Sequence record: NC_048048.2
Direction: 5' to 3' (one strand)
Length of the DNA: 64,000 nucleotides
Shown here: in pieces, positions 43,614-63,602 of the stretch
Numbering within the stretch: position 1 is the stretch's first letter
How the letters are laid out: each line of letters opens with the position of its first letter
Program-made: the position numbers and the translations under genes
Notes under the pieces: generated by a model
Told to the model about the DNA's origin: nothing
Database searches by the model: none
Seen by the model: the letters and a program-made list of their open reading frames with translations, nothing else

Positions 43614-43756
43614 GTGTGCGCCTCTCTCGTCTGCCGTGGCCGCTCGCCACGCTTCCTTCATCGCATACAAGAAAACTGTTGCCAAGCCCCAAAGATCGCT
43701 TGACAGCATAAAAGCCCAATGCGACAAGGGGACATCCAAACGGGAGACACCCCCCA

Positions 43757-44329
43757 ATGACCACCGAAACCCTCGACCTCCTCTATCCGGTCCTGATGCT
43801 GGAGCAGAAGATTCCCCACCGCGAAGGCATGTTGCGGCTGGCCATCGTCCTGCGCGACTTCGGCCCCAAGGCGCCCCATCGCTACGTCACCCACCTGCGG
43901 GCTGAAAACCCCGTGCCGGGCTCTGACCACGCCTTCACCTACAGCTATGAGCATGGCACCTATTCGGCCGACCTGCGCCGCGCCCTGGCCGTCTATTTCG
44001 AGCGCGTCACCGAGCGGGTCATGACCGCCATGGTCGTGCTCCACGACCTGCCCGAGGTCGCGCCGCCGGCGCCGACCGTCACCGTGCCGCTCGAACTGGC
44101 CCAGACCGCCTATGGCCTGATCGATGACAACGAACTGGACCTCTCCAAGGCCTGCGGCAACGTCACCTTGGTCGAGGCCGCCATTACCGGTCTGGCCGCC
44201 GTCCTGGGACCGCGCCGCTACTTCCGCGATGTCGAGGAAGGCAACGCCAAGCTTCTGGAGGCCTTCGAAGCCCAGCAAGCCGCGCGTGACGCGGCCCTAG
44301 AAGCCGAATCCGAAGAGGAAGAGGCCTAA
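43757..44329 (+). CDS. cassette gene, hypothetical
   Basis: GGGAGACACCCC leader. Confidence 0.8.
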   Translation: MTTETLDLLYPVLMLEQKIPHREGMLRLAIVLRDFGPKAPHRYVTHLRAENPVPGSDHAFTYSYEHGTYSADLRRALAVYFERVTERVMTAMVVLHDLPEVAPPAPTVTVPLELAQTAYGLIDDNELDLSKACGNVTLVEAAITGLAAVLGPRRYFRDVEEGNAKLLEAFEAQQAARDAALEAESEEEEA

Positions 44330-44499
44330 AAAGCCCGCCCAGGCCTCCCCGGCCTGGGCGTGAGCCCTCCAGGGGCCGTTAAGGTTAACGCCAGGGGCCG
44401 GGACGTTAAGGTTAAGGCCGAAAATAGTGCGAGAAACCTGTTGACACGCATTGCGGCCCTATGCGAGAACAAGGCTCCACTTCATGAGGAGCGCCAAGC

Positions 44500-45126
44500 A
44501 TGGCCCTGCCCGATCACTTCCTGGTTTCCGTCGACGGCTCGCTCTATGACACGCGGGTGCAAGGCTGGAACCAAGCCGCGCCGCTGCGGATCAATTACCG
44601 GATCGTCAATCGCGACATCCACGGCATGAGCGAGGTCAAGGCCGCCTTGCGCTGCGGCGCCTTTACCGACATCGGCGGCTATCCGCTGTATTTCGTCACG
44701 CAGGACGGCCGCGCCCTGTCCTTCGACAGCGCCCGCAAGATGCTCTATCAGATCGCCGACGATTTCCAGCATGGCGCCTCGACCGGCTGGCGGATCACCG
44801 GCGCCCTCATCAACTACGAGGATCACGACCTCGTCTGCGATCACAGCGGCGAGAAGATTCCGGCCGCCTATGATCCGGTGCAATGGGCCGCAGGCTGCAA
44901 TGTCTCGGGCTTCATGCCCGACAGCGAGCCTTCCCACCATGCGACCTGGGAAGAGGCCAAGGAAGACTTGCGCGCCCAGGTCGAACTGGCGCGCGAGCCC
45001 TACGAGATCGGTTCGGACGAGGACGACGCCCTAGCCCGCGTCGCCCGCGCCCTGGAGGCCCTTAAGGAAGGCCAAGAGCTTAACATGGGCGCCATCGGCT
45101 ATCGCTGGTGGGTCGAACGCCTGTAA
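44500..45126 (+). CDS. cassette gene, hypothetical
   Basis: GAGGAG SD; YPLYFVTQDG...CDHSGEKIPAAY. Confidence 0.8.
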   Translation: MALPDHFLVSVDGSLYDTRVQGWNQAAPLRINYRIVNRDIHGMSEVKAALRCGAFTDIGGYPLYFVTQDGRALSFDSARKMLYQIADDFQHGASTGWRITGALINYEDHDLVCDHSGEKIPAAYDPVQWAAGCNVSGFMPDSEPSHHATWEEAKEDLRAQVELAREPYEIGSDEDDALARVARALEALKEGQELNMGAIGYRWWVERL

Positions 45127-45147
45127 ACCAAGGAAAGGACCCCTTCC

Positions 45148-45294
45148 ATGTTCATTCTCATCGTCGGCAATCCCAGCGACGGCTTCACTTATTACGGCCC
45201 CTTCGACGAGCATGACGACGCCGTCACCTATGCCGAGGCGACCGGCACCGAGGGCAACCCCTGGTGGGTCGCGCCCCTGGAAGCGGCGGACTAG
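45148..45294 (+). CDS. 48-aa hypothetical protein
   Basis: AAGGA SD; MFILIVGNPSDGFTYYGPF. Confidence 0.7.
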   Translation: MFILIVGNPSDGFTYYGPFDEHDDAVTYAEATGTEGNPWWVAPLEAAD

Positions 45295-45300
45295 CCCGTC

Positions 45301-45435
45301 ATGACCGCTCTCGAAAAGCGCGGCTACAAGGCCGCCCAGGCGGGCGTCAAGTGGTGGAACAACCCCCACCCCAGCGGCTCCCCGGCCGCCTATCAGTGGG
45401 ACAAGGGCCACACCCGCCACCGCCTCGGACGCTAG
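45301..45435 (+). CDS. 44-aa Rmf/CrpP-like protein
   Basis: KRGYKAAQAG...NPHPSGSPAAYQWDKG. Confidence 0.6.
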   Translation: MTALEKRGYKAAQAGVKWWNNPHPSGSPAAYQWDKGHTRHRLGR

Positions 45436-45614
45436 CCGAGCCCAGGCCTTCGCGCCTGGGCTTTGCCCGCCCCCTGGGCGTTAAGGTTAAGGCCGAAAAT
45501 AGTTCAAGAAACCTGTTGACACGCATCAGGCTCCCATGCGAGAACAGGATCAGACGAAACGACAAGACCACAAAGGAGGCCGCCATGAAGTAGCGACAAT
45601 CTGGAGCACAACTC

Positions 45615-46001
45615 ATGGAATTCTTCGTCCGCACCACGCTGGTCAGCATCGCCCGCCACTGGGAGGACGGCGCCGACGTGATCGCCACCTGCTATTGCGT
45701 CTGTGTCGAGTACCCGGACGGCGCCCGCTATGTCCACGACTATCAGCCGGTCGACCGCTATGTCAGCGCCGACGACGAAGGCGAGCCCATCTATCCCTGG
45801 CGGGACGGCGAGGCCATCAAGGCCAAGCTGGACGCCTTGCGCGATGAGATCGCCGCCCACGTCGCCGCTGGCGGGAGCCTCGATCCTGGCCACTGGTTCG
45901 AGGTCGATCCGCGCTACGGCTCCCCGGCCTATATGGGCCTGGACGCCTTCGGGTTCTTCCGGGCGCGCGAAAAGCAAGAGGCCGCCGAGCGCGGCGACTG
46001 A
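45615..46001 (+). CDS. cassette gene, hypothetical
   Basis: GGAG SD; ...DPRYGSPAY. Confidence 0.8.
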   Translation: MEFFVRTTLVSIARHWEDGADVIATCYCVCVEYPDGARYVHDYQPVDRYVSADDEGEPIYPWRDGEAIKAKLDALRDEIAAHVAAGGSLDPGHWFEVDPRYGSPAYMGLDAFGFFRAREKQEAAERGD

Positions 46002-46008
46002 CACCCAA

Positions 46009-46036
46009 AAGGCCCGCCCATCCGGCGGGCCTTTTT
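46009..46036 (+). terminator. intrinsic terminator
   Basis: AAGGCCCGCC-loop-GGCGGGCCTTTTT. Confidence 0.8.
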
Positions 46037-46055
46037 CCTTGACCACCGCCTGGGG

Positions 46056-46082
46056 TTAACCTTAAGGCCGCGTTAAGGTTAA
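46056..46082. promoter_or_regulatory. extended CtrA-type box (example; exact N7 copies also near 47122, 47797, 49537, 51660, 54325, 56380, 57734, 63014)
   Basis: TTAACC-TTAA-N7-TTAA-GGTTAA. Confidence 0.8.
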
Positions 46083-46183
46083 GCCCGCCCAGGCCCGTAA
46101 AAAGATGCAAGAAACCTGTTGACACGCATGGAAGGCCTATGCGAGAACAGGGCTCAACACCAACGCCAGCCGGGAGACACCCC

Positions 46184-46774
46184 ATGGCCCTCGTCACCGA
46201 ATCCTTTGTCGTCGATCTGGCCTGCGGGCGCGCCCTGACCAACGGCGAGCGCCGCATGGTCGCCGCCGTGATCGACTCGCTTCTCGACCCGCATTTCAAG
46301 TCGACCGCCTGGGTCAAGGGCGGCGACCATCGCGAGGCCGTCCACTACTGCGACCGCGTGACGCCCTACAGCCTGCACGGCGAGAACGCCAACGCCGCGC
46401 GCGTGCGCACCGAGGCCCTGACCACCCGCGACCATGACGCCCCCGTCCTGCTGTCGCTGTCGGTCGGCGACACCATCGGCGAAATCGCCCGCTTCTACAC
46501 CATCGCCGCCGCTGTCGAATATCTCGACGGCAACCCCGATATCGATCCGACCTCGCTGCACATGGGCGCCTACACCATTGACGCCCCGTTCGGCGTGGCC
46601 AATGACATCGAGGCTGACAAGCTCCTCTATGACCTGGGCTATCGCCTGCACGCCATGGCCGGCGGGTCCTGGACCTACAGCGATCCGCAGGGCCGCCTGT
46701 GGGACGGCGGCGGCAAGCGCGAAGCCGTGGTCATGATCGCTCTGAAGCAAGCCGCCGACGCTGAAGAGGCCTAA
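46184..46774 (+). CDS. cassette gene, hypothetical
   Basis: GGGAGACACCCC leader. Confidence 0.8.
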   Translation: MALVTESFVVDLACGRALTNGERRMVAAVIDSLLDPHFKSTAWVKGGDHREAVHYCDRVTPYSLHGENANAARVRTEALTTRDHDAPVLLSLSVGDTIGEIARFYTIAAAVEYLDGNPDIDPTSLHMGAYTIDAPFGVANDIEADKLLYDLGYRLHAMAGGSWTYSDPQGRLWDGGGKREAVVMIALKQAADAEEA

Positions 46775-46779
46775 GGCCC

Positions 46780-47103
46780 GTGAAGCGCCGTCACGCCCTC
46801 TTCCTGTCGGTGATCGCTTCGGCGCCCGACGTGGTGATCCTGCAAGCTCCGGCGCACTTCCTGCGCTGGAGCGACCACCGCAAGGCCATCCTGGCGTTCA
46901 TGCGCCAGACCTACGGCGTCAAGGCCGCCGACGTTCACGCCGTCGAAGGCGTCGCCGGCTATGCCGAACCCGACCCGACCGACGACCCCGCCGTCCTGGC
47001 GCGCTTTCAAGCCGCCTTCGCCGGGTCTGACAACTTCCCCAAGGTCGCCCTGGCGGCCTGGGACGGGCAGGCCTATCGGCTGGTCCGCCGGCCTCTGGCG
47101 TGA
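46780..47103 (+). CDS. hypothetical protein
   Basis: GTG start after upstream stop. Confidence 0.65.
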   Translation: MKRRHALFLSVIASAPDVVILQAPAHFLRWSDHRKAILAFMRQTYGVKAADVHAVEGVAGYAEPDPTDDPAVLARFQAAFAGSDNFPKVALAAWDGQAYRLVRRPLA

Positions 47104-47227
47104 GGCCGCCACCGCCCAGGCTTAACCTTAACGTGGCGTTAAGGTTAAGGCCGAAAATAGTTCAAGAAAGCTGTTGACAGCATAGGAGGCTTATGCGAGA
47201 AAGGCTCATCGAAACGGGAGACACCCC

Positions 47228-47743
47228 ATGGACGACACCTATCCGCCCCTGACCCCCGGCCAGCAAGCCGCCCTGGTCGCCTTCGCCGACCAGCATGGCG
47301 GCCTGGGCGAGGCCTGGAAAGAGGCCCTGAGCGACGCCTGGAGGACGTGCAGCGAGCCCGATGCGCTCAAGGCCGACCTGCGGACCATCCGCAACACCTA
47401 TGGCCCCTCCTGGCTCTATGACGAATACGCCTGGGGCTGGCGCCCGACCCTTCCCGACTGGGAGCGCGCCGGCCGCTGGACCGACACCCCGCCGCAGCCG
47501 ACGCCGGGCAAGGCTCGCTGGAGCGCCGCCTTCGACCCGCCGGCCATCGGCGACCGGGTGCGCGTGACCACCAACGGCCTGGGCTGGGCGCGGGTCACCG
47601 GCTACTTCGTCGAAGCCGACTGGCTGGGCGTGATTGTCAAGCTGGAGGCCCCGGCCGACTGGTATGTCAAACAGAACGGCGGCAACGTCCCCGGCCACAG
47701 CTTCGGGACCGAGATCGCCCTGACCGACCCCGCGACCGACTGA
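47228..47743 (+). CDS. cassette gene, Trp-rich hypothetical with SH3-like C-terminus
   Basis: conserved leader; PAIGDRVRVTTNGLGWARV. Confidence 0.8.
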   Translation: MDDTYPPLTPGQQAALVAFADQHGGLGEAWKEALSDAWRTCSEPDALKADLRTIRNTYGPSWLYDEYAWGWRPTLPDWERAGRWTDTPPQPTPGKARWSAAFDPPAIGDRVRVTTNGLGWARVTGYFVEADWLGVIVKLEAPADWYVKQNGGNVPGHSFGTEIALTDPATD

Positions 47744-47923
47744 CCTGGACGGCCCTGGCTGGGAGACCAGCCGGGGCGAGGCCTAACCCGGCGCGGTTAA
47801 CCTTAACCGCCCATTAAGGTTAACCGCCGGCGCCCTGGGGCGGGCGAAAGAAAATGCAAGAAAACTGTTGACACGCATCTGAGGGCTATGCGAGAAAGGG
47901 CCATCGAACAACGGAGGCCCCTC

Positions 47924-48766
47924 ATGGCCAAGCTATTCAGCGACCTTCAGGACCTTGCCAACTCGACCTATGTCGTGCGCATCGTCGACAATGGCGGCCA
48001 GAGCGCCGACCGCTACACGATCGTCACCGCCGATGGCGACTATTACGCCTACAGCGCCAATCCCGCCCATCCCCAAGGCGTGGGCCTGAGCGGCGAGGGC
48101 ATCGACCCGCAAGTGCTGGTCGACTGGGTGGAGCGCGGCGAAGCCGTCGACCTGACCATCGGCGAGCTACCCGAGGCCGCCGCCCGCTGTCTGCTGGCGT
48201 CGATCAACGCCAGCGTCGAGGACTTCCTGTCGGCTGTCGAGGACCCGACCAGCAACGCCGTGGCCCCGACCCGCGAAAAGGCGGAGATCAATGACGGCGT
48301 GATGGATTGCTTCGGCAAGGGCATCTATCGCGTGGGCGAGGGTTTCGCCGTGCGCATGGATGGCCTGGACGCGGGCGATGATCGCGGCCCCTTCATGAGC
48401 GCTGTCGAGGCGGTCAAGGCCACCCTCCCCGATGAATACGCCTGGGCTGGCGAGGAATACCTGTCGCCGCGCGACATGACCAAGATCACGCCCGAAGCCA
48501 AGCCGCTCGTTCTGGTCCACGCCCTGGAGGCCATTCGCGACTATGAATATCAGCGCGACAACCCCGGCTCGTTCTTCGACGGGCTGAACGAGGACGACAC
48601 TGACGCGGGCCTGGGCATCGTGCGCCGCACGCGCTACCTGTCCAAGGTCACCGATGATGCGACCATCGTCGGGCTGATCGGCGAGGCGCCGGCCTTCGCC
48701 CTGGCCCATGAATGTCTCGACCAACTGTGGACCCTGGCGCAAGAGCGGTGGGAGGCGGGCCAGTGA
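47924..48766 (+). CDS. cassette gene, hypothetical
   Basis: GGAGG SD; RIVDNGGQSADRYTIV. Confidence 0.8.
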   Translation: MAKLFSDLQDLANSTYVVRIVDNGGQSADRYTIVTADGDYYAYSANPAHPQGVGLSGEGIDPQVLVDWVERGEAVDLTIGELPEAAARCLLASINASVEDFLSAVEDPTSNAVAPTREKAEINDGVMDCFGKGIYRVGEGFAVRMDGLDAGDDRGPFMSAVEAVKATLPDEYAWAGEEYLSPRDMTKITPEAKPLVLVHALEAIRDYEYQRDNPGSFFDGLNEDDTDAGLGIVRRTRYLSKVTDDATIVGLIGEAPAFALAHECLDQLWTLAQERWEAGQ

Positions 48767-48966
48767 GCGCCCGCGAACGCCGCGCCCTCTCCGAACTGCT
48801 GGCCCTGTTCCACGCGGTCAACAGCGGCCACGTCAAGGGCCGCAACCCCTACGCCTTCCCGGCCGTCAAGCTCGCCAACGAGGTATTGACGGGCGACCCG
48901 CTGGACGGGGTTTCCACGTCGCCGAAGCCCTGGACCGGCATCGCGAGGCGGACGGCAAGGCCTTGA
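48763..48966 (+). CDS. hypothetical protein
   Basis: GGAGG SD, GTGA overlap. Confidence 0.65.
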   Translation: MSARERRALSELLALFHAVNSGHVKGRNPYAFPAVKLANEVLTGDPLDGVSTSPKPWTGIARRTARP

Positions 48967-49070
48967 TTTTCGAGGTCGGCGGTTGCCCGGACGGCTGCTT
49001 GCTGTCCTACAGCGGCGCGGTTCCGCGCTGCGTCAACTGCGACACCGAATATCCCGAAGAAAACGGTTGA
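48963..49070 (+). CDS. 35-aa Cys-rich peptide
   Basis: TTGA overlap; GCPDGC...RCVNC. Confidence 0.45.
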   Translation: MIFEVGGCPDGCLLSYSGAVPRCVNCDTEYPEENG

Positions 49071-49121
49071 CAGCATAAGGGAGCTATGCGAGAAAGGGTC
49101 ATCAACGGAGACACCCCGCCC

Positions 49122-49262
49122 ATGTGGACCGAAAAGACCTTCAAGACCCGCGCCGCCAAGGAGGCCTGGATCGCCCGCAATGAAGACCGCTATCAGATCG
49201 TCGAGATCGTGGTCTGCAACGCCTACGGCGTGACCTACAAGCCCCTCCGACGCGTCTACTAG
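49122..49262 (+). CDS. 46-aa cassette gene
   Basis: conserved leader; MWTEKTFKTRAAKEAW. Confidence 0.75.
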   Translation: MWTEKTFKTRAAKEAWIARNEDRYQIVEIVVCNAYGVTYKPLRRVY

Positions 49263-49272
49263 GAGACCTCGC

Positions 49273-49464
49273 ATGATCCCCGACTCGGTCCGTAACCCGC
49301 AAGATCATTGGACCCCCATCGCCACCCGCGCCAAGGCTGACGCCCTGGCCTATCGCTACAACCAAGATGACGCCGGCCCCGGCCTCTACGAGGTCCACGA
49401 AAAGGGCGAAAGCTTCGCCATCGCCTACTATGACGAAGACGGCGCCTTCTGCGGCTACGTCTAA
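49273..49464 (+). CDS. 63-aa hypothetical protein
   Basis: AGGAG SD. Confidence 0.75.
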   Translation: MIPDSVRNPQDHWTPIATRAKADALAYRYNQDDAGPGLYEVHEKGESFAIAYYDEDGAFCGYV

Positions 49465-49481
49465 CCCGCTCCTGTCAACTT

Positions 49482-49518
49482 GAAGGCCGGCGCCGCTCTC
49501 CTGGCGCCGGCCTTTTTC
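49482..49518 (+). terminator. intrinsic terminator
   Basis: AAGGCCGGCGCC-loop-GGCGCCGGCCTTTTT. Confidence 0.85.
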
Positions 49519-49673
49519 TTGCCCGCCGCCTGGGTCTTAACCTTAAGGCGAGATTAAGGTTAACGCCGCCTTAAGGTTAACCGGTGCCCCGCATCCCGCC
49601 CGGATGCAAAAAACCTGTTGACACGCATTTCGACCCTATGCGAGAAAGGCGACGAACACGGGAGACACCCCTT

Positions 49674-50672
49674 ATGACCACGACCATTCCCGGCGCCGAG
49701 CATACGATGATCGGACAAGCCGCCTATCGCTCGACCAAGCGCCCCGACCAAGTGCGCGAGATGGCCTATGGCGCGTTCCCGGCCGCGACGTCGGACTCGC
49801 CCTTCGCCGTCAAGCCGGCCTGTGGCAAGGTCCCGAGCGCGCGCGTGCTGGAGGACTTCGACCCCGCCGACGTCTTCACGACCAGAGCCAATGATCGCGG
49901 CGGCTTCTATGCCTCCGCCAACTTCGGCGGCTCTGAGGTGTCGTGGATCAGCATCGCCGGCTATGGCGACACCGAGGAGGCCGCCCGCGCCGATCTCATG
50001 GCCCGGTTCATCGCCGACCGCGACGGCAAGGGCAAATTTGGCCCTCACCATCCCCTGGTCGGCTATGACTGGGGCTATAAGCTCGCCCCGTTCTGGGACA
50101 TGCTGGAGCGCGAGGCCGCCATTCGCCAGCCCTTCAAGCGCCAGCTTTACCTGGGCAAGCTGAAGTCCGGCCGCCCTAATCCCAAGGGCTTTGACGTGTT
50201 CGTCGATGTCGAATGGACCGGCGTGCGCCTGTCGCTGTCGGGCGTCATCGGCCCCAAGGCCAATGGCAACGCCTGGGACGGCGCAGGCCAGATCGTCGGC
50301 AGTCTCAAGCGCAAGGACTTTCTGGAGTTCGCCCCGTCCTGGCATTATGGATCGGCCCTTGACGGTCTGGTCCAGGCCTGGACCCGCTGGCACCTGAACG
50401 ACCTGCGCGCCGGCACGCTTCGGCAGGAAGACCACCTGCGCGGCTATGAGGCCAAGCGCAACATTGAGCAGGCCAAGGCCGCCGGCGCCCATTCTCTCGA
50501 CGCCACCCGCGCCGAACTGGCGCGCGTCCATATGGAGCCCGACACCTGGGAGCGCCACAACGGCCGGCCCTATAGCTACGGCTCCGCATGGCTTCGCGAG
50601 GAGGTCCCCACCTACGTTCTCGACTTCCTGCGCAATCTCCCCGCCCCCACCAAAATCAGCCCCTGGAGGTAA
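49674..50672 (+). CDS. cassette gene, hypothetical multidomain
   Basis: conserved leader; WTRWHLNDLRAG...YSYGSAWLREEVP. Confidence 0.8.
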   Translation: MTTTIPGAEHTMIGQAAYRSTKRPDQVREMAYGAFPAATSDSPFAVKPACGKVPSARVLEDFDPADVFTTRANDRGGFYASANFGGSEVSWISIAGYGDTEEAARADLMARFIADRDGKGKFGPHHPLVGYDWGYKLAPFWDMLEREAAIRQPFKRQLYLGKLKSGRPNPKGFDVFVDVEWTGVRLSLSGVIGPKANGNAWDGAGQIVGSLKRKDFLEFAPSWHYGSALDGLVQAWTRWHLNDLRAGTLRQEDHLRGYEAKRNIEQAKAAGAHSLDATRAELARVHMEPDTWERHNGRPYSYGSAWLREEVPTYVLDFLRNLPAPTKISPWR

Positions 50673-50679
50673 CCCGCCC

Positions 50680-51114
50680 ATGGCCATCAACACCGCCGGC
50701 CTCGTCGGCAAGCTCAAGGAAGCCCTCGCCGCCGCCCCCAACCTGACCCTATGGGCCAAGGAACGCGGCCTCTTCCATCAGAACGTTTCGGCCGCCGCGC
50801 GCGGCGACACCGTGCCGCAAGAAAGCATCGCCAAGGCCCTGGGCTTCCGACGCGTCCACGTCCAGGCCTATCTGGCGCCGGGCGAAGCCCTGCCGCTCCT
50901 GCCGCCCGGCTGGGAGGAGGTGCTTCCCGGTTCGGCGACCCCGGTCGACTGGAAGCCCCGCGACAAGGCCGCCGCCCCCGCCCCGCGCCGGGTCGGTTCG
51001 CCCGACCAGATGGCCAAGGCCCGCGACGCGCGCCGGCCGCGTTCCGCGCCGGTCCAGCCCCCGGCCCAAACCGCCGGCAAGCCTCGCCGCAAGAAAGTGC
51101 AAGAAACCGGTTGA
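50680..51114 (+). CDS. XRE/Cro-type HTH protein
   Basis: NLTLWAKERGLFHQNVSAAARGDTVPQESIAKALGF. Confidence 0.7.
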   Translation: MAINTAGLVGKLKEALAAAPNLTLWAKERGLFHQNVSAAARGDTVPQESIAKALGFRRVHVQAYLAPGEALPLLPPGWEEVLPGSATPVDWKPRDKAAAPAPRRVGSPDQMAKARDARRPRSAPVQPPAQTAGKPRRKKVQETG

Positions 51115-51164
51115 CAGCATAAGGCGGCTATGCGAGAAAGGCTCATCACTTCTGGAGCAAGCCC

Positions 51165-51374
51165 ATGGCCGCCTTCATCTGCACCGCCGATCTCAACGCC
51201 CTGGTCGAGGACATCGCCTATGACGTGGAGATGGAAGACCGCGCCGCCGAGGAACTCGACGGCCTGGACTTTGGCGACCGCTGTTACTACGGCGACCGCG
51301 CTTACCATGGCCAGCTTGAGCTTGCCCGGATCATCGAGACGGCCGTCGCCGCTCATCCCATCCTGTACGCCTAG
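51165..51374 (+). CDS. acidic 69-aa cassette gene
   Basis: GGAG SD downstream of promoter. Confidence 0.75.
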   Translation: MAAFICTADLNALVEDIAYDVEMEDRAAEELDGLDFGDRCYYGDRAYHGQLELARIIETAVAAHPILYA

Positions 51375-51390
51375 CAGAGGAGGCGCCGCT

Positions 51391-51603: not shown

Positions 51604-51606
51604 GGC

Positions 51607-51634: not shown

Positions 51635-51779
51635 GTCTGTCCCCCGCCCGGCGATAACCTTAACGCCGCGTTAAGGTTAACCCCCTGGGACGGGGGGCGC
51701 CGCCGCAAAAACTGCAAGAAAACTGTTGACACGCATTTCGACCCTATGCGAGAAAGGCGCATCAACCACGGAGGACAAC

Positions 51780-53938: not shown

Positions 53939-54002
53939 CAAGGCTGTTGACAGCATCAAGGCCCTATGCGAGAAAGGCTCATCGCCACCGGAGACACCCG
54001 CG

Positions 54003-54310: not shown

Positions 54311-54479
54311 CCCCGCGCCTGGGGTTAACCTTAACGCCGCCTTAAGGTTAACCCGGCCGGATCGTTTTTCGTCTTTTGTGTCGGGCCGTCTTTCGTTTTC
54401 CGTGTCGAGGTGCAAGAAAGCTGTTGACAGCATAAAAGCCCTATGCGAGAAAGGCTCATCGCAACCAAGGAGCCCGACC

Positions 54480-55620: not shown

Positions 55621-55729
55621 TCCTGGGCGATCGGCGTTAACCTTAACGCGCAAGAAAACTGTTGACACGCATTGCAGCCCTATGCGAGAAAGAGCGCCTA
55701 GGCCGCTTTGGCCCCTGGAGACTTGCGTC

Positions 55730-56311: not shown

Positions 56312-56331
56312 AAGCTGGCCTCGCGCCAGCA

Positions 56332-56362
56332 AAAAGGCCCGTCCCCTGGCGGGGCGGGCCTT
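56332..56362. terminator. terminator between convergent genes
   Basis: AAAAAGGCCCG...CGGGCCTT hairpin. Confidence 0.65.
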
Positions 56363-56419
56363 GTCCGGTCCGATCGGGATTAACCTTAACGAGAGATTAA
56401 GGTTAACGCGCCCTTAAGG

Positions 56420-56665
56420 TTAACTGGTGGCGTTCTTGCGCGTCGTGGCCTGGGGATTGGCCTTGAGCCATGCGTCGGCTTCCGTGCGGGTCGAGAACGG
56501 CGCCCCGCCAATGCCCTGCGTGCCGTCATCCCATTGAATGGTCCAACCCACGTCCTTGATTTCCCAATCCTCCGCCACGCCATGGGGAATCGGCGTATGA
56601 AGCGCGATGCGGGTAAAGGGCGCGCGCTTGAGTTGACGGATGCGCGCCGGAATGACTTGCGGCAT
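56420..56665 (-). CDS. 81-aa hypothetical protein on the minus strand
   Basis: AAGGA SD; own minus-strand promoter TTGACA(56744)-N16-TACATT. Confidence 0.75.
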   Translation of the reverse strand: MPQVIPARIRQLKRAPFTRIALHTPIPHGVAEDWEIKDVGWTIQWDDGTQGIGGAPFSTRTEADAWLKANPQATTRKNATS

Positions 56666-56843
56666 GTGTGGAATTTCCTTGACAAAGGCCTTGCCCCATG
56701 GGCGGCCCGAAAGGCGAATGTAGCAAGCGGCGCTTTCGTGTCAAGAAATGCGACATGGGCTAGAATCCTGTTGACACGCATTGCGGTCCTATGCGAGAAA
56801 GATCGGGCAAAGGCGCATCCCGCGCCGCTGGGAGACACCCCGC

Positions 56844-57614: not shown

Positions 57615-57677
57615 GTGAAGCTCCTCGAAGGCGGCGGCCTGCTCGCGCTCTGCTTCCTCCTCTGGTTGCTTCACTAA
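57615..57677 (+). CDS. 20-aa hydrophobic peptide
   Basis: MKLLEGGGLLALCFLLWLLH*; GTG directly after the upstream TAG. Confidence 0.65.
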   Translation: MKLLEGGGLLALCFLLWLLH

Positions 57678-57716
57678 ACCCGGCCGGCGTCCATGACCTG
57701 GGCGCCGGCCTTTTCT
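57678..57716 (+). terminator. intrinsic terminator
   Basis: GGCCGGCG-loop-CGCCGGCCTTTT. Confidence 0.75.
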
Positions 57717-57774
57717 TACCGCGCCGATCGGGGTTAACCTTAACGCCGTCTTAAGGTTAACGGCGGGCCTGGAG

Positions 57775-57877
57775 GCGAGGGCGTCAAGGCCGCGAGCTAG
57801 GATTACACGCGATGGCTTAGCCGGCGTCCAGCCGGCGGCGCCTTCGACCACCGCGAGGCGGCCTTGACCCTCGCAAT
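57775..57877 (-). ncRNA. candidate structured ~100-nt small RNA
   Basis: 17-bp closing stem with a 2-nt bulge, 9-bp inner stem with G-U pairs only on the minus strand, GCCGGC hairpin; minus-strand TTGACA-N16-CGAGAT promoter at 57903-57876. Confidence 0.6.
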
Positions 57878-57988
57878 CTCGCCGATCCGCGACCAAGTGT
57901 CAACCGTTTTCTTTTTCCAAGAAACCTGTTGACACGCATCGAACGCCTATGCGAGAAAGACTCAACGTCAACGCCTGGAACCCTATCC

Positions 57989-58645
57989 ATGCCCCGCACC
58001 GTCACCAAACAGGTCTACACCTTCAAGGAACTGAATCCCAAGGCCAAGCAAAAGGCCATCGAGTGGTATCGTGGCCTGAACGATCAAGACTCCGGTTGGT
58101 GGGATTTCGTCTATGACGAAGCCGACCGCATCGCCGAAGCCTTCGGGATCACCCTGCGCCGCAAGGAAGCCGGCAAGCCCAATAGCGGCCCGGACATCAT
58201 GTTCACCGGCTTCTGGAGTCAAGGCGACGGCGCCTGTTTCCAAGGCCGCTACGAGTCGCCCCAAACCCCGGCCGTCGAAGCCTTCGCCGCCCTGGGGATC
58301 GAAGACGCCACGCTCAAGGCTCTGGCCGCCCGCCTCGACGCCCTGAGCGCCAAGGTGCGCTTGATCAGCACGGTCAAGCACTCCGGTCACTACTATCACG
58401 AGTATTGCACCGACTTCGAAACCGAGCGCATGGTTCCCGACGACGCCGGCGACGACTTCGATATCTACGATTTCGACCACGAGGACGAAAAGGAACTGAT
58501 CGACATTCTTCGCAGCTTCATGAAGTGGATTTATCGCCAGCTTGAGGCCGTGGACGAAGATCGCAATTCCGATGAGACGATCAGCGAAACCCTGACCGAC
58601 TCCGATTACGAATTCGAGGCGGACGGCTCGCCGACCAACGACTAG
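57989..58645 (+). CDS. acidic cassette gene of a widespread mobile-element family
   Basis: VYTFKEL...AKQKAIEW...WWDFVY...FTGFWSQGDGACF...YEFEADG. Confidence 0.8.
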   Translation: MPRTVTKQVYTFKELNPKAKQKAIEWYRGLNDQDSGWWDFVYDEADRIAEAFGITLRRKEAGKPNSGPDIMFTGFWSQGDGACFQGRYESPQTPAVEAFAALGIEDATLKALAARLDALSAKVRLISTVKHSGHYYHEYCTDFETERMVPDDAGDDFDIYDFDHEDEKELIDILRSFMKWIYRQLEAVDEDRNSDETISETLTDSDYEFEADGSPTND

Positions 58646-58700
58646 GCCAAGCCCGCCGCGCCCGGCCTCAACGCCGGGCGCGTGTCGGGTTTTGGTTTTT
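58646..58700 (+). terminator. intrinsic terminator
   Basis: GCGCCCGGC-loop-GCCGGGCGC followed by T-rich tail. Confidence 0.6.
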
Positions 58701-58819
58701 CAAGGTCCTGTTAAGGTTAACGAAAAAAGCCCTCGGACGGCCTGAGAAAAACGCAAGAAAACTGTTGACACGCATCCAAGCCCTATGCGAGAAAGGCTCA
58801 TCGCAACGGGAGACACCCC

Positions 58820-59107
58820 ATGACGACCCAAGCCAAGAAGCGCCGCAAGCGCTACCCGCCCAAGAGCGACGCGGCCAAGGCCCGCGCCGCCGCCAAGAGC
58901 AAGGCGTTCTTCGCCCGTCACGCGCTCAAGGCCACCGAGGCCACGATTGCCGCCATGAAGGCCGGCGATCAAAAGGCCGTCCAACGCCACGCCAAGGACG
59001 CCCGGCGCCTGACCCGCTGGATGAACCACAAGCGCGACATCGCCGCCGCCTTCGCGGCCGTCTTCAACATTCGGGCCGCCGCCCAAGCCCTGAGAGCCGC
59101 CGCATGA
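58820..59107 (+). CDS. basic Ala/Lys/Arg-rich cassette gene
   Basis: conserved leader. Confidence 0.8.
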   Translation: MTTQAKKRRKRYPPKSDAAKARAAAKSKAFFARHALKATEATIAAMKAGDQKAVQRHAKDARRLTRWMNHKRDIAAAFAAVFNIRAAAQALRAAA

Positions 59108-59319
59108 CCCGTCGCCCTGCCTTTCTGACCGTCCTGGGCGGGATTGGCCTCATCCTGGCCAGCTTCGTCCTTTCGGCCGCCAGCGCCCCGGAAAAGCGGG
59201 TTCTCGTGGGTCAATACTGCGACGGCGACCCCGTGCGCCTCTACGGCCTGGAAGACGGCGAGGAAGCCGCGCAAGCGTGCGCCATCGTCGAAGTCCACGC
59301 CCTGCCCAAGGGCTTCTGA
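59104..59319 (+). CDS. small secreted or membrane protein
   Basis: MTRRPAFLTVLGGIGLILASFVLSAASA; two Cys. Confidence 0.65.
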   Translation: MTRRPAFLTVLGGIGLILASFVLSAASAPEKRVLVGQYCDGDPVRLYGLEDGEEAAQACAIVEVHALPKGF

Positions 59320-59321
59320 CC

Positions 59322-59579
59322 ATGGCCGCCCCGAACGACAGCCGCGAGGAGCCGGTCAAGGTCGAAGACCTCAAGGGCGGCATGATGTGCGATCTTGAGG
59401 GCGACATGTACGCCGACAACGCCGGGCGCTTCCCGGAATTCGAGTTCGCCTATGCCGTCGTCGTCGAAGTCGACACGGCCCCGCGCTACGAGGCGCCGGG
59501 GACGGTCCTGGTCGAGTTCGACAAGATCACCGTGGCCTTTCCCAAGGGCCACACCCTGCCGACCATCAAGGAACCCTAG
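59322..59579 (+). CDS. hypothetical protein
   Basis: coupled ORF. Confidence 0.75.
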   Translation: MAAPNDSREEPVKVEDLKGGMMCDLEGDMYADNAGRFPEFEFAYAVVVEVDTAPRYEAPGTVLVEFDKITVAFPKGHTLPTIKEP

Positions 59580-59581
59580 AC

Positions 59582-60115
59582 ATGGAACGCCTCAACGTCC
59601 ACGTGCTGACCGTCACCTATGACAGCGGCAACCCCGTCCCGCCGTTCGTCGCCCTGGGCATGTCCAAGGAGGAACTTGACGACACCCTGGAGGCCCTGGC
59701 GCGCGAGGAAGTCGATAACCGCTATTTCGAGGAAGAAGACCTCTTAGACGACCTCGCCAAGTTCCTGACCGCCGAACGCGTCGCCGAGCTTGAGCCCCTG
59801 GGCCTGGACGCCATCGGCCTACTGACTCCGGTCGAAATCGTCGACATGGCCAAGCGCTTCGCCTCGATCACGCCAAGCTTTGACGTGCTCCCGCTCTACC
59901 GCGACCCGCCGCCCGTCCGCGCCTTCGATCTCGACGACCGCGAAGCCGCCGCCGTCCTGACCGGCCTGCGCATGATCCAAGCCCAAGGCGTCCCGGACGA
60001 TCTCGACGACCTCGCCACCAATGGCGGCGCCTTCGAGCCCCTGGACGGCGACGCCATCGACGGGCTCTGTGTGCGGATCAATTTCGACGTGACCGGCGAG
60101 GCGCCGGCCTCCTGA
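59582..60115 (+). CDS. acidic hypothetical protein
   Basis: AAGGA SD. Confidence 0.75.
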   Translation: MERLNVHVLTVTYDSGNPVPPFVALGMSKEELDDTLEALAREEVDNRYFEEEDLLDDLAKFLTAERVAELEPLGLDAIGLLTPVEIVDMAKRFASITPSFDVLPLYRDPPPVRAFDLDDREAAAVLTGLRMIQAQGVPDDLDDLATNGGAFEPLDGDAIDGLCVRINFDVTGEAPAS

Positions 60116-60195
60116 CGCAAGAAAGCTGTTGACAGCATAATCCGCCTATGCGAGAAAAGGCTGTCAACGGCGATCCCCGCCGCATGGAGACACCC

Positions 60196-60540
60196 ATGAA
60201 GTTCATCAAGACCGACATCCTCGACCACGGCCGCGCCTCGACCCTGCGCAACGCCCTGGGCACGGCCCTGGAGCGCTACACCGAAATCGGCAAGGAATTC
60301 GAGGGCTACCTGAACGACTATCAGGCCCTGGACGAGGCGGGCAAGGAAGCCTGGAAGGCCCGCAACCACTGGATCAACCCGCGCGCCCTGCCCGACCTCA
60401 AGACCCAGTTCGAGCGCCAAGCCGCCGACGTGCAAGACCTCATCAACTGGCTTGACGGCGACAAGTTCATGAACGAAGACGGCGATTTCCCCAAAGGGAC
60501 CGAGTTCACCATTGTCGCCGGCCTGATCCGCGACTTCTAA
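60196..60540 (+). CDS. cassette gene, hypothetical
   Basis: GGAGACACCC leader. Confidence 0.8.
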   Translation: MKFIKTDILDHGRASTLRNALGTALERYTEIGKEFEGYLNDYQALDEAGKEAWKARNHWINPRALPDLKTQFERQAADVQDLINWLDGDKFMNEDGDFPKGTEFTIVAGLIRDF

Positions 60541-60550
60541 ACGCCCTGGT

Positions 60551-60579
60551 CAAGGCCCGCCCTCACGGCGGGCCTTTTC
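60551..60579 (+). terminator. intrinsic terminator
   Basis: AAGGCCCGCC-loop-GGCGGGCCTTTT. Confidence 0.8.
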
Positions 60580-60734
60580 CTTGACCTCGCGCCGTTGTTA
60601 ACCTTAACGTGCAATCGTTCGCCTGTTAACCTTAACGGGACATGCCTGATCCGTTAACCATAGCCTGCAAAAAAGCTGTTGACTCGCATCCAAGCCCTAT
60701 GCGAGAAAGGGTCATCAGCAACGGGAACGATCCC

Positions 60735-61133
60735 ATGACCCAAGAATACACCGCCGAAGAACGCCAAGCCAAGTTGACCGAAATGGCCGATCACTGGCGC
60801 GAGCAACTGAAGGACGCCCAAGCCCGCCTGGACATGACCGTCCTCGTCGGTCAAGGATTCGTCTGCGCTCTGGAGCGCGATCTTTCCATGGCTATCCGCG
60901 CTGACGGTCCCGACCGCTATCGCCTGTGGCCAGTATCGGCGCGCATGGTTCCCATCCTCCACTTCACCAAACTTGACGCCATGCGGGTCGCCGCGCACTG
61001 GAATGGCAACCTCCCCGACGATAAGCAGGACCTGCGAGTCGTCGCCACCCATTACCGCGACGTGCTTCAAGCCTATGTCGAGACCGCAACGGCGCAAATC
61101 GCCTGGATCGAAGGCGGCTGCAAGGCCGCCTGA
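60735..61133 (+). CDS. cassette gene, hypothetical
   Basis: GGGA SD after promoter. Confidence 0.8.
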   Translation: MTQEYTAEERQAKLTEMADHWREQLKDAQARLDMTVLVGQGFVCALERDLSMAIRADGPDRYRLWPVSARMVPILHFTKLDAMRVAAHWNGNLPDDKQDLRVVATHYRDVLQAYVETATAQIAWIEGGCKAA

Positions 61134-61323
61134 CCTTGACGCCCTCCGGCTCCGGCCGGAGGGTTAATTTCTGCCCAGCCCGCGTTAAGGTTAACCCGCC
61201 GCCGGCCTGGGATTAACCTTAACCCGCAACCGTTTGCGGGTTAACCATTCGATGCAAGAAAGGTGTTGACACGCATTTAGGCCCTATGCGAGAAACGCCT
61301 ATCAGCAACCGGGAAACACCCCC

Positions 61324-61887
61324 ATGCCGCAATTCGTTCTCGACACTTCGGGCAAGGCCCGTGTTGGCGCCACCAAGAATTTTCCGAACGGCGTCACCAT
61401 CAACTGGAATGATCTCGACGCCTTCACCCAAGGCTATATCGAGGCGCTGTTTTTCACCGAAAATTCCCCGGCCTTCACGTCGGACGAATGGCACGGCGAG
61501 GAATGTCAAGCCGCGCTTGAGGCCGGCACGTCTGACGGCTCGCTCCCCGGTGACGCCGGTTTCGCCGACCTTCATGAAACCGCCCTGGCCACCATCGTCG
61601 AGGAGTGCGCCGCCTTCCAACGCGAAAACGCCGACCTGTTGGCGCAAGCCTATGGCCACAACTTCCCGGCGCGGGTGATCGGCGACGGCACCTTGCCCGA
61701 TTCCCACCGCCCGGCGTGGGACTATGACGAGGCGGCGGCGGGGCGGGATTTCTGGTACACTCGCAACGGCCATGGCGTCGGCTTTTGGGATCGCGGCCTA
61801 GGCGAGGTCGGCGACAAGCTTTCCGACGCCTGCCGTTACTCTGAGGTTTACGTGTCGTTCGAGGCTGACGGCAAGGTTCATCTCTAA
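61324..61887 (+). CDS. cassette gene, conserved phage hypothetical
   Basis: conserved leader; FTQGYIEAL...GRDFWYTRNGHGVGFWDR. Confidence 0.8.
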   Translation: MPQFVLDTSGKARVGATKNFPNGVTINWNDLDAFTQGYIEALFFTENSPAFTSDEWHGEECQAALEAGTSDGSLPGDAGFADLHETALATIVEECAAFQRENADLLAQAYGHNFPARVIGDGTLPDSHRPAWDYDEAAAGRDFWYTRNGHGVGFWDRGLGEVGDKLSDACRYSEVYVSFEADGKVHL

Positions 61888-61893
61888 CCCGGC

Positions 61894-61921
61894 AAAGGCC
61901 CGCTTGACAGCGGGCCTTTTT
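61894..61921 (+). terminator. intrinsic terminator
   Basis: AAAGGCCCGCT-TGAC-AGCGGGCCTTTTT. Confidence 0.85.
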
Positions 61922-62049
61922 CGTGCCTGCCCCACCTGGGTTAACCTTAACGCCAGCCCGCTTCGCCTTAACGCTCTTTTTGCAAGAAAACAGTTGACTC
62001 GCATCCAAGCCCCATGCGAGAAAAGGTCATCAACCACGGAGCGCCGCAC

Positions 62050-62424
62050 ATGGCCAAAACCGAAACCGTCGACCTCGCCCTGGTCATGCTCGATGAGCAA
62101 AAGGCCGCCCTGGGCGCCTCCCGGACCTTCACCTTTCACGAAGTCCGCGCGGCGTTCATCGACGCCAAGGCCCTGACCACGCTTGAGGCCACCTTGCACA
62201 AGATCGCTGAACACGAGTGCAACGGCTATCGCAGCGACATCACCGAACGTTTCGACATCCGCCGCCGCGACAAGGCGCAAGCCGCCGCCACGGCCATTGC
62301 CGAGCGCTACGGCCTGACGCTCGATTTCAACGGCGACCCGCGCGGTTCGGCCCTGAAGATCAAGACCCCGCACACCGGCCGTTACAACGGCTTTGGCGGG
62401 CGTGAGGATGGATGGTGCGTCTAG
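62050..62424 (+). CDS. cassette gene, hypothetical
   Basis: GGAG SD; IAEHECNG...FNGDPRG. Confidence 0.8.
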   Translation: MAKTETVDLALVMLDEQKAALGASRTFTFHEVRAAFIDAKALTTLEATLHKIAEHECNGYRSDITERFDIRRRDKAQAAATAIAERYGLTLDFNGDPRGSALKIKTPHTGRYNGFGGREDGWCV

Positions 62425-62493
62425 CGCCATCCTGACCCCCTTCCACCCCCTGTAGCGCGTCCCTCTCAAACCCCTGGCCCTAGGAGACACCCC

Positions 62494-62664
62494 ATGGCCC
62501 GCACCACCACCCACACCCGCACCGACAAGGCCAAGCGCGAGACGCTGGCGCCGTGGGAATATGACCGCCAGCACAAGGCGGACAAGAAAGCCGCCAAGGC
62601 GTGGCGCACCGATCGCCAAGGCCGCCGCGCCCTGGCCTCTTCGGACGCCTTCAAGGCCCACTAG
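62494..62664 (+). CDS. 56-aa basic protein
   Basis: AGGAGACACCCC leader; MARTTTHTR. Confidence 0.7.
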   Translation: MARTTTHTRTDKAKRETLAPWEYDRQHKADKKAAKAWRTDRQGRRALASSDAFKAH

Positions 62665-62757
62665 GCGGGCTCGAAAAAAGTTCGGCTCGATGCGAGAAAG
62701 CTGTTGACTCGCATCGAGCCCCTATGCGATAAAGGGTCATCAAACGGAGACACCGAC

Positions 62758-62922
62758 ATGACCCACCTGCAACGCGCCACCACCGACCAAGTCACCGTCG
62801 AGCACTACGCCGTTTCGGGCGGTCAACTGACCGTCACCCGCGCCCCCGCCCGCGCCCCGATCTATCGCCTGAACGGCTTCAAGATCACCTACTTCGAGGC
62901 CAAGCGTAAGCTCGCCGCCTAA
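62758..62922 (+). CDS. 54-aa cassette gene
   Basis: conserved leader. Confidence 0.75.
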   Translation: MTHLQRATTDQVTVEHYAVSGGQLTVTRAPARAPIYRLNGFKITYFEAKRKLAA

Positions 62923-62936
62923 GACCCCTCCCCGAT

Positions 62937-62966
62937 AAGGCCCCCTCCCTGGAGCGGGGCCTTTTT
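62937..62966 (+). terminator. intrinsic terminator
   Basis: AAGGCCCC...GGGGCCTTTTT. Confidence 0.7.
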
Positions 62967-63156
62967 CGTGGCCGTTAGCCAAGCGTTAAGGTTAACCCGT
63001 AGGGTTGATTTCGTTAACCTTAATGGGGCGTTAAGGTTAACGGGCCGGCCCAGGCTGTTAACCCTGCGGGCGAAGAAAGTGCGATCCTGTGCAAGAAAGC
63101 TGTTGACTGCATAAGCGTCCTATGCGACAAAGGGTCATCAACAACGGAGCTACCCG

Positions 63157-63327
63157 ATGTCCTTCCGCCTGACCCTCACTGACGAAGCCCGCTTCACCGC
63201 CGCGCGCGGCGCGGTCCGCACCGTCCGCGAACAGGCCCGCCCTGAGCCGGCCAAGGACGGCTCGGGCAAGTACGTCCTGGCCTCGCAAGACGCTCTGTCG
63301 CGCATCCGCGCCGTGCTGGGCAACTAA
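63157..63327 (+). CDS. 56-aa cassette gene
   Basis: GGAG SD after promoter. Confidence 0.7.
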   Translation: MSFRLTLTDEARFTAARGAVRTVREQARPEPAKDGSGKYVLASQDALSRIRAVLGN

Positions 63328-63330
63328 GCC

Positions 63331-63516
63331 ATGAAGGTCACGGCGCACTATGGCAACGGGCTCTCGCGGGTGATCCCCTGCGAGACGCCGCAAGCCGCTC
63401 TGGACGCGATCAAAGCCGCGCTGCGCTATGATCGTTCGGCGACCTTCACGGTTGACAAGCGCCTCACCCAAGGCGCGCCGACCCGCGCGGCCTCCGAACG
63501 GGTTTGGCTGCTGTAG
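63331..63516 (+). CDS. 61-aa hypothetical protein
   Basis: coupled ORF. Confidence 0.65.
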   Translation: MKVTAHYGNGLSRVIPCETPQAALDAIKAALRYDRSATFTVDKRLTQGAPTRAASERVWLL

Positions 63517-63602
63517 AAGAAAAAAGCGAGTCGACGCAAAAAAGCTGTTGACTCGCATAAGGCCCGTATGCGATAAAAGGTCATCAGCAACGGAGACACC
63601 CG

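Follow-up and report, generated by a model that had tools for sequence, protein, structure and literature searches.

The stretch of DNA analysed here (64,000 bp, hereafter the window) is identical (100%) to positions 253490–317489 of record NC_048048.2 and represents the right genome end of the Caulobacter phage CcrSC (genus Bertelyvirus, 317,489 bp). Most of its direct terminal repeat, 23,946 bp in size, is occupied by an array of 23 cassette units over which 41 annotated genes are distributed; the array is consequently present twice per genome, and its 23 cassette promoters amount to 46 copies when both terminal repeats are counted. Each of these promoters carries the inverted repeat GCAT-N9-ATGC (the dyad) between the -35 and -10 boxes. 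An earlier note, prepared from the sequence of the window, had pointed to this palindrome and proposed that one dimeric regulator, possibly encoded by a gene within the array (gp018), switches all cassettes together. We describe here the dyad, its conservation and distribution, and weigh its possible role as the operator of a phage-encoded repressor. Coordinates refer to the window unless assigned to the record or to another phage; those of the promoters are collected in Table 1.

With 25 occurrences in the window, the motif GCAT-N9-ATGC far exceeds the expected number (1.06; maximum of 5 in 100 shuffles). In 23 cases, all on the plus strand, it starts 1 or 2 nt after TTGAC and is followed by GA(G/T/C)AA. 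The whole CcrSC genome contains 25 dyads per terminal repeat and only four in the 270-kb unique part, which corresponds to the chance level, all four being located within coding sequence; other spacings from N5 to N13 (N9 excepted) yielded 0–6 sites each in the entire genome. The promoters are built in a uniform order: an A-rich upstream element (consensus TGCAAGAAA), N-CTG, TTGAC(A/T), no or one extra base, the dyad and GA(G/C/T)AAA; then come a conserved start region, a short leader containing a ribosome site of the GGAG type, and the ATG. The dyad occupies the spacer, with its last base directly before the -10 hexamer, and hence overlaps the core promoter; from its end to the first ATG of the cassette there are 31–50 nt, in one case 76 nt. 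The spacer measures 17 bp in eight promoters and 18 bp in 15, with the 9-nt gap constant in both groups. The presence of the dyad in the spacers of 23 copies of one promoter type, its extension to 6-bp arms (TCGCAT-N9-ATGCGA) in some copies, which turned out to be four (P18, P20, P21 and P23), and the persistence of the 9-nt gap when the -35 box shifts by one base had all been claimed before and were borne out by this analysis.

The boxes recognised by Caulobacter RpoD (sigma-73) have been defined as TTGaCgS (-35) and GCtANAWC (-10) (PMC8144410). TTGAC is present in 23/23 array promoters, as TTGACA in 18 and as TTGACT in five, whereas the -10 sequence GCGAGAAA matches six of the eight positions of the RpoD box (five of the seven specified ones): GCGA(G/C/T)AAA agrees at G, C, A, N, A and W and deviates at the weakly conserved t and the final C. 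The -35 7-mer and the -10 8-mer are separated by 14–15 bp. Judged by both boxes, the array promoters look like those of the Caulobacter RpoD type. The -10 region had previously been described as an unusual TG-C-GAGAA, which is correct only by E. coli standards and explains why a generic E. coli-type scan, requiring T at hexamer position 6, misses the array promoters; to the box of the host it fits at 6/8 positions.

Approximately 30 other CcrSC promoters, located in the unique part, share the upstream element and TTGACA with those of the array but possess a CCTAGA-type -10, an unconserved spacer and no dyad. On account of these promoters, two RpoD-type classes can be distinguished by sequence in CcrSC, and the dyad is the mark of one of them. 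The second-class promoters are found on both strands at approx. 165–281 kb of the CcrSC record (for example, at window position 10214, record 263703) with the layout TGC(A/G)AGAAA-N-CTG-TTGACA, and the operons downstream consist of nucleotide-metabolism and unknown genes. The dyad-less copies of TG-C-GAGAA reported earlier at 21524 and 24742 do exist, but in each case a second promoter uses them as its own upstream element (TGCGAGAAA-N4-TTGAC), which also recurs in the ~30 other phage promoters. They belong to two homologous tandem promoter-like pairs (21504–21570 and 24722–24790), in which TTGAC-N17-GAGAAA is directly followed by CTG-TTGAC and a second -10; TGCGAGAAA here has a double role, as -10 for the first promoter and as upstream element for the second.

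The conservation of the dyad was assessed in 83 non-identical promoters from four Bertelyviruses (CcrSC, CcrBL9, RB23 and BL47), whose repeats are 79–88% identical. In 79 of them the distance from GCAT to ATGC is exactly 9 nt, and in these the junction between TTGAC and GCAT is 1 nt (36 promoters) or 2 nt (43 promoters) long. As the gap is fixed while the junction varies, the length variation of the aligned spacers is wholly absorbed outside the dyad; one orthologous pair from CcrSC and CcrBL9 (P16) differs by one base at the junction and has an identical N9. In 16 orthologous CcrSC/CcrBL9 pairs, substitutions affected 0/64 positions of GCAT, 1/96 of ATGCGA, 32/144 of N9, 43/416 of the leader and 123/384 of upstream DNA (Fisher tests: GCAT versus N9, p = 4e-6; GCAT versus leader, p = 0.003). 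The N9 is thus variable, as the earlier note had it, with 22% change between orthologues. Since GCAT remained unchanged next to such an N9, these counts place the left arm under selection, with a constraint equal to that on the -35 hexamer, and leave the N9 nearly free. A dyad of no function, merely carried along in the 23-fold duplication of one ancestral promoter, would agree with the fact that the promoters clearly form one family spread by duplication. However, the free divergence of N9 beside an intact GCAT, and the retention of GCAT in nearly all of the promoters from phages only ~79% identical, speak against it, and we regard it as highly improbable.

Outside the genus, the dyad was searched for in hosts and in related phages. 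Three Caulobacter genomes contain 24–28 dyads each, with no excess over the ~37 estimated from base composition alone; this corresponds to ~6 per Mb, as compared with ~1000 per Mb in the CcrSC repeat. TTGAC together with the dyad was found in 151 Caulobacteraceae genomes as 14 scattered single matches, which is the chance level, and the contexts of four AT-rich host instances were inconsistent with one another. Among the matches listed from IMG/VR, clustered TTGAC-plus-dyad sites occurred only in the record of CcrBL9, and the terminal repeats of phiCbK, CcrColossus and CcrPW contain zero dyads. Within the genomes compared, the dyad is confined to Bertelyvirus. In sum, the sequences show that the dyad exists, is under selection, has a rigid geometry and is limited to this promoter set and this genus.

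The cassettes of the sister phages are instead preceded by a different promoter. In phiCbK, CcrPW and the Brevundimonas phage Marchewka, TTAA-N7-TTAA (the CtrA box) lies over the -35 region and is followed by a CTAGGGT-type -10, with 13–19 copies per array in CcrPW (2995–18000) and Marchewka (1–26500, minus strand) and about five in the shorter repeat of phiCbK (2296–6466); no TTGACA-plus-dyad promoters were found in these three arrays. Activation by CtrA has been demonstrated by reporter assays for two of the phiCbK cassette promoters (PMC9437464). The arrays of phiCbK, Colossusvirus and the Brevundimonas phage resemble that of CcrSC in cassette type, genome position, subfamily and the placement of a regulator site in the promoter core. 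They differ in that this site serves the host activator CtrA, whereas Bertelyvirus has a full TTGACA and the spacer dyad. Strict CtrA boxes do occur 46–93 bp upstream of 7/23 CcrSC promoters, with none over the -35. Judging from the CtrA-box -35 of the sister-genus cassettes, Bertelyvirus appears to have swapped an activator-dependent -35 for the full TTGACA and to have gained the dyad in the spacer.

The same comparison offers an argument for a host factor as the dyad's ligand, namely a Caulobacter protein with few chromosomal sites that would couple the array to the state of the host: because the sister arrays use CtrA-box promoters, a host-factor site in the promoter core can be considered the ancestral logic of the array. 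To our knowledge, no known Caulobacter regulator motif matches the dyad, and neither the dyad counts in the three Caulobacter genomes nor the TTGAC-plus-dyad matches in the 151 genomes rise above expectation. Furthermore, the motif of the RtrA/Cdx/TgrL group of XRE proteins is CAAC-like, not GCAT (PMC10688885, supplement). A co-opted host site is, in our opinion, improbable.

The arms themselves would suit a symmetric ligand. An outer fifth pair (CGCAT..ATGCG) is present in 40/45 promoters with an 18-bp spacer; with a 17-bp spacer it is impossible, that base being part of the -35, and here an inner fifth pair is found in 25/38 promoters versus 5/45 of those with 18 bp (p = 2e-7, uncorrected for relatedness). 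This pattern favours symmetry as such. The argument for a dimer is based on the exact complementarity of GCAT to the 4-mer preceding the -10 hexamer, on the fixed distance between them and on the fifth pair. A second dyad around the -10 (GCCCT..AGGG) was also considered and rejected, as its covariation was unconvincing. Inverted half-sites, fixed spacing, selection and overlap with the core promoter, all of which are found here, are among the traits of an operator. The operators of lambdoid Cro/CI, HipB and LexA are likewise made of short inverted half-sites at a fixed distance which overlap the core promoter, and those of HipB (TATCC-N8-GGATA) and LexA (CTGT-N8-ACAG) show that arms of 4–5 bp placed 8–9 bp apart are a workable geometry.

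The gene proposed as an XRE/Cro helix-turn-helix (HTH) gene is indeed an open reading frame, annotated as gp018, and forms a cassette with gp017, for which family and profile searches gave no match. In the ESM-Atlas, residues 1–70 of gp018 lie nearest to clusters of small viral proteins of the HTH_3, HTH_26 and Cro/C1 types (score 0.94, 149 shared features). The AlphaFold2 (AF2) monomer has four N-terminal helices with a predicted local distance difference test (pLDDT) score of 50–66, and the top Foldseek matches, nearly all of them XRE/Cro domains, included HipB, 434 Cro and repressor, SinR and controller (C) proteins of restriction-modification systems, with template modelling scores, TM(target), of 0.5–0.6. 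Residues 1–100 were predicted to form a symmetric homodimer with a score of 0.73, compared with 0.00 for the best of three controls; this mark was attained by 20/30 solved one-chain pairs and by 1/23 solved single chains. Contacts agreed between runs to at least 97%, with a partner pLDDT of at least 87. The predicted interface (residues 55–67 and 77–86) coincides with the invariant block of a four-sequence alignment. This supports dimerisation, which would run through a conserved beta-strand block.

Homologues of gp018 are limited to nine Bertelyvirus genomes, always in the repeat, and one Logan contig encodes a homologue (61–69% identical) whose gene is immediately followed by the same promoter, dyad included. 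In addition, when three terminal repeats were searched for extra dyads with no more than one mismatch, the gp017–gp018 cassette was the sole place where they lay at a promoter: in CcrSC and CcrBL9 a further perfect dyad precedes the -35 by 27 bp, and RB23 and BL47 have an overlapping second near-dyad. Autoregulated repressors typically have extra operators at their own promoter. Owing to its Cro/XRE-like neighbours, the predicted homodimer, a phyletic range matching that of the dyad and the two dyads at its own promoter, gp018 is the candidate we favour, although we consider its identity as the dyad-binding protein possible rather than likely.

From these data we infer that a protein binds at the dyad, that repression is the effect and, tentatively, that gp018 is the protein. 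A symmetric dimer of a phage DNA-binding protein would occupy approximately -29 to -13 of each cassette promoter, covering the spacer along with the upstream margin of the -10 box and so excluding the host RNA polymerase with RpoD. The promoters, which look strong and host-like (A-rich upstream element, TTGACA and GC-GA-N-AAA), would fire upon entry of the DNA, and accumulation of the regulator would then shut off all host-takeover cassettes jointly. The likeliest regulator would be gp018, acting as a Cro-like HTH dimer, and its cassette promoter, uniquely provided with two dyads, would confer negative feedback. To the dyad being an operator for a phage-encoded repressor we assign a probability of roughly 0.45 on the present sequence evidence; that it is a protein operator of any sign, be it for repression or activation, seems slightly better than an even bet.

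A number of observations weigh against this reading. A search for RNA-type sequencing runs that contain the stretch found none. The right arm, ATGC, supplies the RpoD -10 box with its G and C and contains the TG of an extended -10, and half of the symmetry of the dyad could therefore represent polymerase contact; strictly, because of this overlap with the Caulobacter box, it is only the left arm, GCAT, that calls for a separate explanation. The N9 is conserved asymmetrically, with GCCC(T/C) adjoining the right arm only, and the fifth-pair pattern could reflect two promoter lineages instead of compensation. As to gp018, no Pfam family was detected at E-values up to 10, apart from one irrelevant match, and no PHROG; nor was there a sequence match in the PDB. 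By the family's own profile criterion the protein cannot be classed as XRE, so that the earlier assignment stands for the reading frame and lacks support from Pfam and PHROGs for the family. The AF2 monomer is poor overall (pLDDT 48) and all Foldseek matches had E-values of 1 or more. Moreover, in BL47 (11927–12045) and in the J4 record the gp018 homologue has a one-base deletion in a run of C, either real or a sequencing error, which shifts the frame after codon 19 with the loss of the first helices; both phages nevertheless keep all dyads. Finally, other HTH proteins of the phage could fill the role of the regulator.

The overlap of the right arm with the RpoD box is also the starting point for explaining the whole block as the extended consensus of strong early promoters, read by the RpoD polymerase alone. 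ATGC would then combine an extended -10 with the GC of the -10 box and GCAT would be a spacer contact or DNA-shape element positioned relative to the -10, their symmetry being incidental. This would accord with the asymmetric N9 and with the fact that many other promoter positions are conserved to the same degree, such as the upstream TGCAAGAAA, the CTG preceding the -35 and TCATC in the start region; the consensus of T4 early promoters likewise extends past the host hexamers. However, the ~30 RpoD-type phage promoters with the same upstream element and -35 do without GCAT and ATGC, and host genomes show no dyad promoters above chance. We estimate that a spacer 4-mer would be the reverse complement of the 4-mer before the -10 by chance at ~1/256 per register, and a fifth complementary pair is retained on the outer or the inner side. 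Furthermore, the second dyad preceding the gp017–gp018 cassette has no promoter of its own. A purely polymerase-intrinsic element therefore appears rather unlikely to us, but deserves to be taken seriously.

If a phage dimer does bind in the spacer, it might also act as a required activator, MerR-like or other, which would make the array a delayed class. The spacer is where MerR-type activators bind, and the GA(N)AAA hexamer is devoid of the -12 T seen in the CTA-type -10 boxes of other phage promoters. On the other hand, the spacers are 17–18 bp long and not of the 19–20 bp that define MerR promoters, and the search for MerR-family proteins in the phage ended with a MerR_1 match at an E-value of 0.014 (14 bits), under the cut-off. 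The -35, the upstream element and the six matching positions of the -10 would suit RpoD unaided, and, irrespective of the leading end, the first genes to reach the cell are those of the terminal repeat. Nor do the promoters resemble the T4 MotA type, as the -35 hexamer is intact in 23/23 and not replaced by a -30 activator box. Activation through the dyad is thus quite improbable, a shade more so than the use of a host factor. The earlier proposal of one dimeric regulator switching all cassettes retains the selected, rigid dyad in every promoter and the circumstantial support from gp018, and is weakened by the RpoD contacts in the right arm, by the missing hidden Markov model (HMM) family of gp018 and by the frameshift in two sister-phage records.

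Several proteins encoded elsewhere in the phage were evaluated as regulators. A CI-like HTH_3 protein (record 147164–147880) matches the PHROG 'transcriptional repressor' over its full length and occurs in all genera with 26–31% identity; its CI/LexA-like architecture (HTH_3 plus a C-terminal domain), here in a phage regarded as virulent, is kept across the subfamily. ORF119, a 119-aa HTH protein (record 164554–164910), is also present in all genera. It is encoded in an operon behind a second-class promoter (record 164554–165513, minus strand) together with a 195-aa protein, which is found in all Dolichocephalovirinae (46–48% identity between genera), is named 'middle transcription regulatory protein' in the record of one relative and gave weak winged-helix matches only, with no match to the MotA Pfam family. 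Another candidate, gp410, is annotated as an HTH protein. A TgrL-like XRE protein (record 171613–172038) was rejected as the binder on the grounds of the CAAC-like motif of its group and the lack of dyad enrichment in the host, and the homologue of T5 A1 was set aside, since it occurs in all genera including those without dyads. The multi-HTH protein gp217 (371 aa; 23610–24725) was rejected as it exists only in CcrSC; for the same reason, the segment 23146–24725, where an HNH-like reading frame (23146–23613) is followed by gp217 with its tandem modules (HTH_23, HTH_3, HTH_30, HTH_38 and Sigma70_r4_2), looks like a mobile insertion of the homing-endonuclease type. Searches of the phage for genes encoding sigma factors, GcrA, ribbon-helix-helix or HTH_17 proteins found none, and a Pfam scan of 34 further terminal-repeat proteins (32 from the array and two upstream) revealed no DNA-binding family.

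The putative circuit can be compared with several established systems. In systems of the Cro/CI type a symmetric HTH dimer binds the operators, and extra operators are found at the regulator's own promoter; for CcrSC such binding is our proposal. Foldseek placed HipB and 434 Cro at the head of the neighbours of gp018, which, unlike Cro/CI proteins, has no HMM-level membership of the XRE family. Lambdoid phages have a single immunity region, whereas CcrSC has one operator type in 23 promoters of a virulent jumbo phage. Coordinated shut-off by one repressor through many copies of a short site, in or beside promoters, operates in the Streptomyces phage phiC31 (conserved inverted repeats at early promoters), in plasmid RK2 (KorA operators at several -10 boxes) and in mycobacteriophage L5 (stoperators). 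These are, however, temperate phages or plasmids with known repressors, the sites of L5 are asymmetric, and sequence, spacing and host group all differ. The host-takeover module of SPO1 and the pre-early region of T5 resemble the CcrSC array in that a long terminal repeat accommodates numerous small genes without known function, with a strong host-type promoter per unit and an expected later shut-off. We know of no shared spacer operator in the SPO1 and T5 modules. The shut-off of the T5 pre-early genes has been discussed previously (PMC3556154).

Table 1. Coordinates of the terminal repeat, array promoters with their dyads, and the gp017–gp018 cassette of CcrSC in the window
Feature	Position	Strand	Remarks
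Right direct terminal repeat, CcrSC	40055–64000	.	identical to record positions 1–23946; contains entire array
P01, 17-bp spacer	43700–43728	+	dyad 43706–43722
P02, 18-bp spacer	44441–44470	+	dyad 44448–44464
P03, 18-bp spacer	45516–45545	+	dyad 45523–45539; left arm degraded in RB23 and CcrBL9 orthologues
P04, 18-bp spacer	46119–46148	+	dyad 46126–46142
P05, 17-bp spacer	47174–47202	+	dyad 47180–47196
P06, 18-bp spacer	47868–47897	+	dyad 47875–47891
P07, 17-bp spacer	49067–49095	+	dyad 49073–49089
Second upstream dyad, gp017–gp018 cassette	49591–49607	+	centre 34 bp before centre of spacer dyad; kept in CcrBL9 at 8861
P08 (gp017–gp018 cassette), 18-bp spacer	49618–49647	+	dyad 49625–49641
gp017, 332 aa, first gene of two-dyad cassette	49674–50672	+	without recognisable family
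gp018, 144 aa, candidate Cro-like dimeric regulator	50680–51114	+	
P09, 17-bp spacer	51111–51139	+	dyad 51117–51133
P10, 18-bp spacer	51726–51755	+	dyad 51733–51749
P11, 17-bp spacer	53947–53975	+	dyad 53953–53969
P12, 17-bp spacer	54424–54452	+	dyad 54430–54446
P13, 18-bp spacer	55662–55691	+	dyad 55669–55685
P14, 18-bp spacer	56771–56800	+	dyad 56778–56794
P15, 18-bp spacer	57929–57958	+	dyad 57936–57952
P16, 18-bp spacer	58765–58794	+	dyad 58772–58788; CcrBL9 orthologue with 17-bp spacer and identical N9
P17, 17-bp spacer	60129–60157	+	dyad 60135–60151
P18, 18-bp spacer, 6-bp arms	60679–60708	+	dyad 60686–60702
P19, 18-bp spacer	61266–61295	+	dyad 61273–61289
P20, 18-bp spacer, 6-bp arms	61994–62023	+	dyad 62001–62017
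P21, 18-bp spacer, 6-bp arms	62704–62733	+	dyad 62711–62727
P22, 17-bp spacer	63103–63131	+	dyad 63109–63125
P23, 18-bp spacer, 6-bp arms	63548–63577	+	dyad 63555–63571

Some further features of the repeat should be mentioned. A stand-alone dyad with 6-bp arms (TCGCAT-N9-ATGCGA; 42431–42447), without -35 or -10, lies between gp004 and an iteron-like array (42923–43125); it is kept in CcrBL9 (at 1599) and missing from RB23 and BL47. The stop codon of gp018 (51112–51114) falls within the -35 hexamer of P09 (51111–51116), with no terminator between the two cassettes, and the basic C-terminal residues of the protein are encoded by the A-rich upstream element of P09. The annotated start of gp041 (62014) is located inside the P20 dyad and gave rise to an apparent distance of 477 nt from dyad to ATG; it is probably 12 codons too early, as the in-frame ATG at 62050 (~33 nt) matches the promoter–ATG distance of all other cassettes. 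The sole minus-strand gene of the array, gp031 (56420–56665), is preceded by an E. coli-like promoter on the same strand (56744–56717; TTGACA, 16 nt, TACATT with TG). In BL47, the inner end of the terminal repeat (25739–29984) contains five tandem units of ~885 bp, each with two dyad promoters and three small genes, which represent a recent amplification of cassettes.

We found no description of the Bertelyvirus promoter or of its dyad in the searchable literature, although the original CcrSC genome paper may mention them. The novel results comprise the substitution counts and the pattern of fifth pairs, the comparison with the CtrA-box arrays of sister genera, the controls in host genomes, the predicted dimer and the two dyads of the gp017–gp018 cassette. 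Taken to its full extent, the proposal is that Bertelyvirus replaced the ancestral control by host CtrA with a self-contained circuit, in which a Cro-like dimer of gp018, a product of the array, gates constitutive RpoD promoters, regulates its own synthesis via a double operator and ends a timed pulse by shutting the 46 promoter copies. This complete scenario is speculative, and we hold it marginally less probable than the role of gp018 as the dyad binder. If true, the entire host-takeover programme of a giant phage of a model bacterium could be addressed through one site, the dyad: with a single operator and a small protein, the array could be switched experimentally, and it would become testable when its 41 genes of unknown function act and to what end. 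The ~45-bp promoter, with or without the dyad, could be used as a compact regulated part for Caulobacter genetics, and the contrast with the CtrA-driven sister genera offers a clear example of how regulation has been rewired inside a single phage subfamily.

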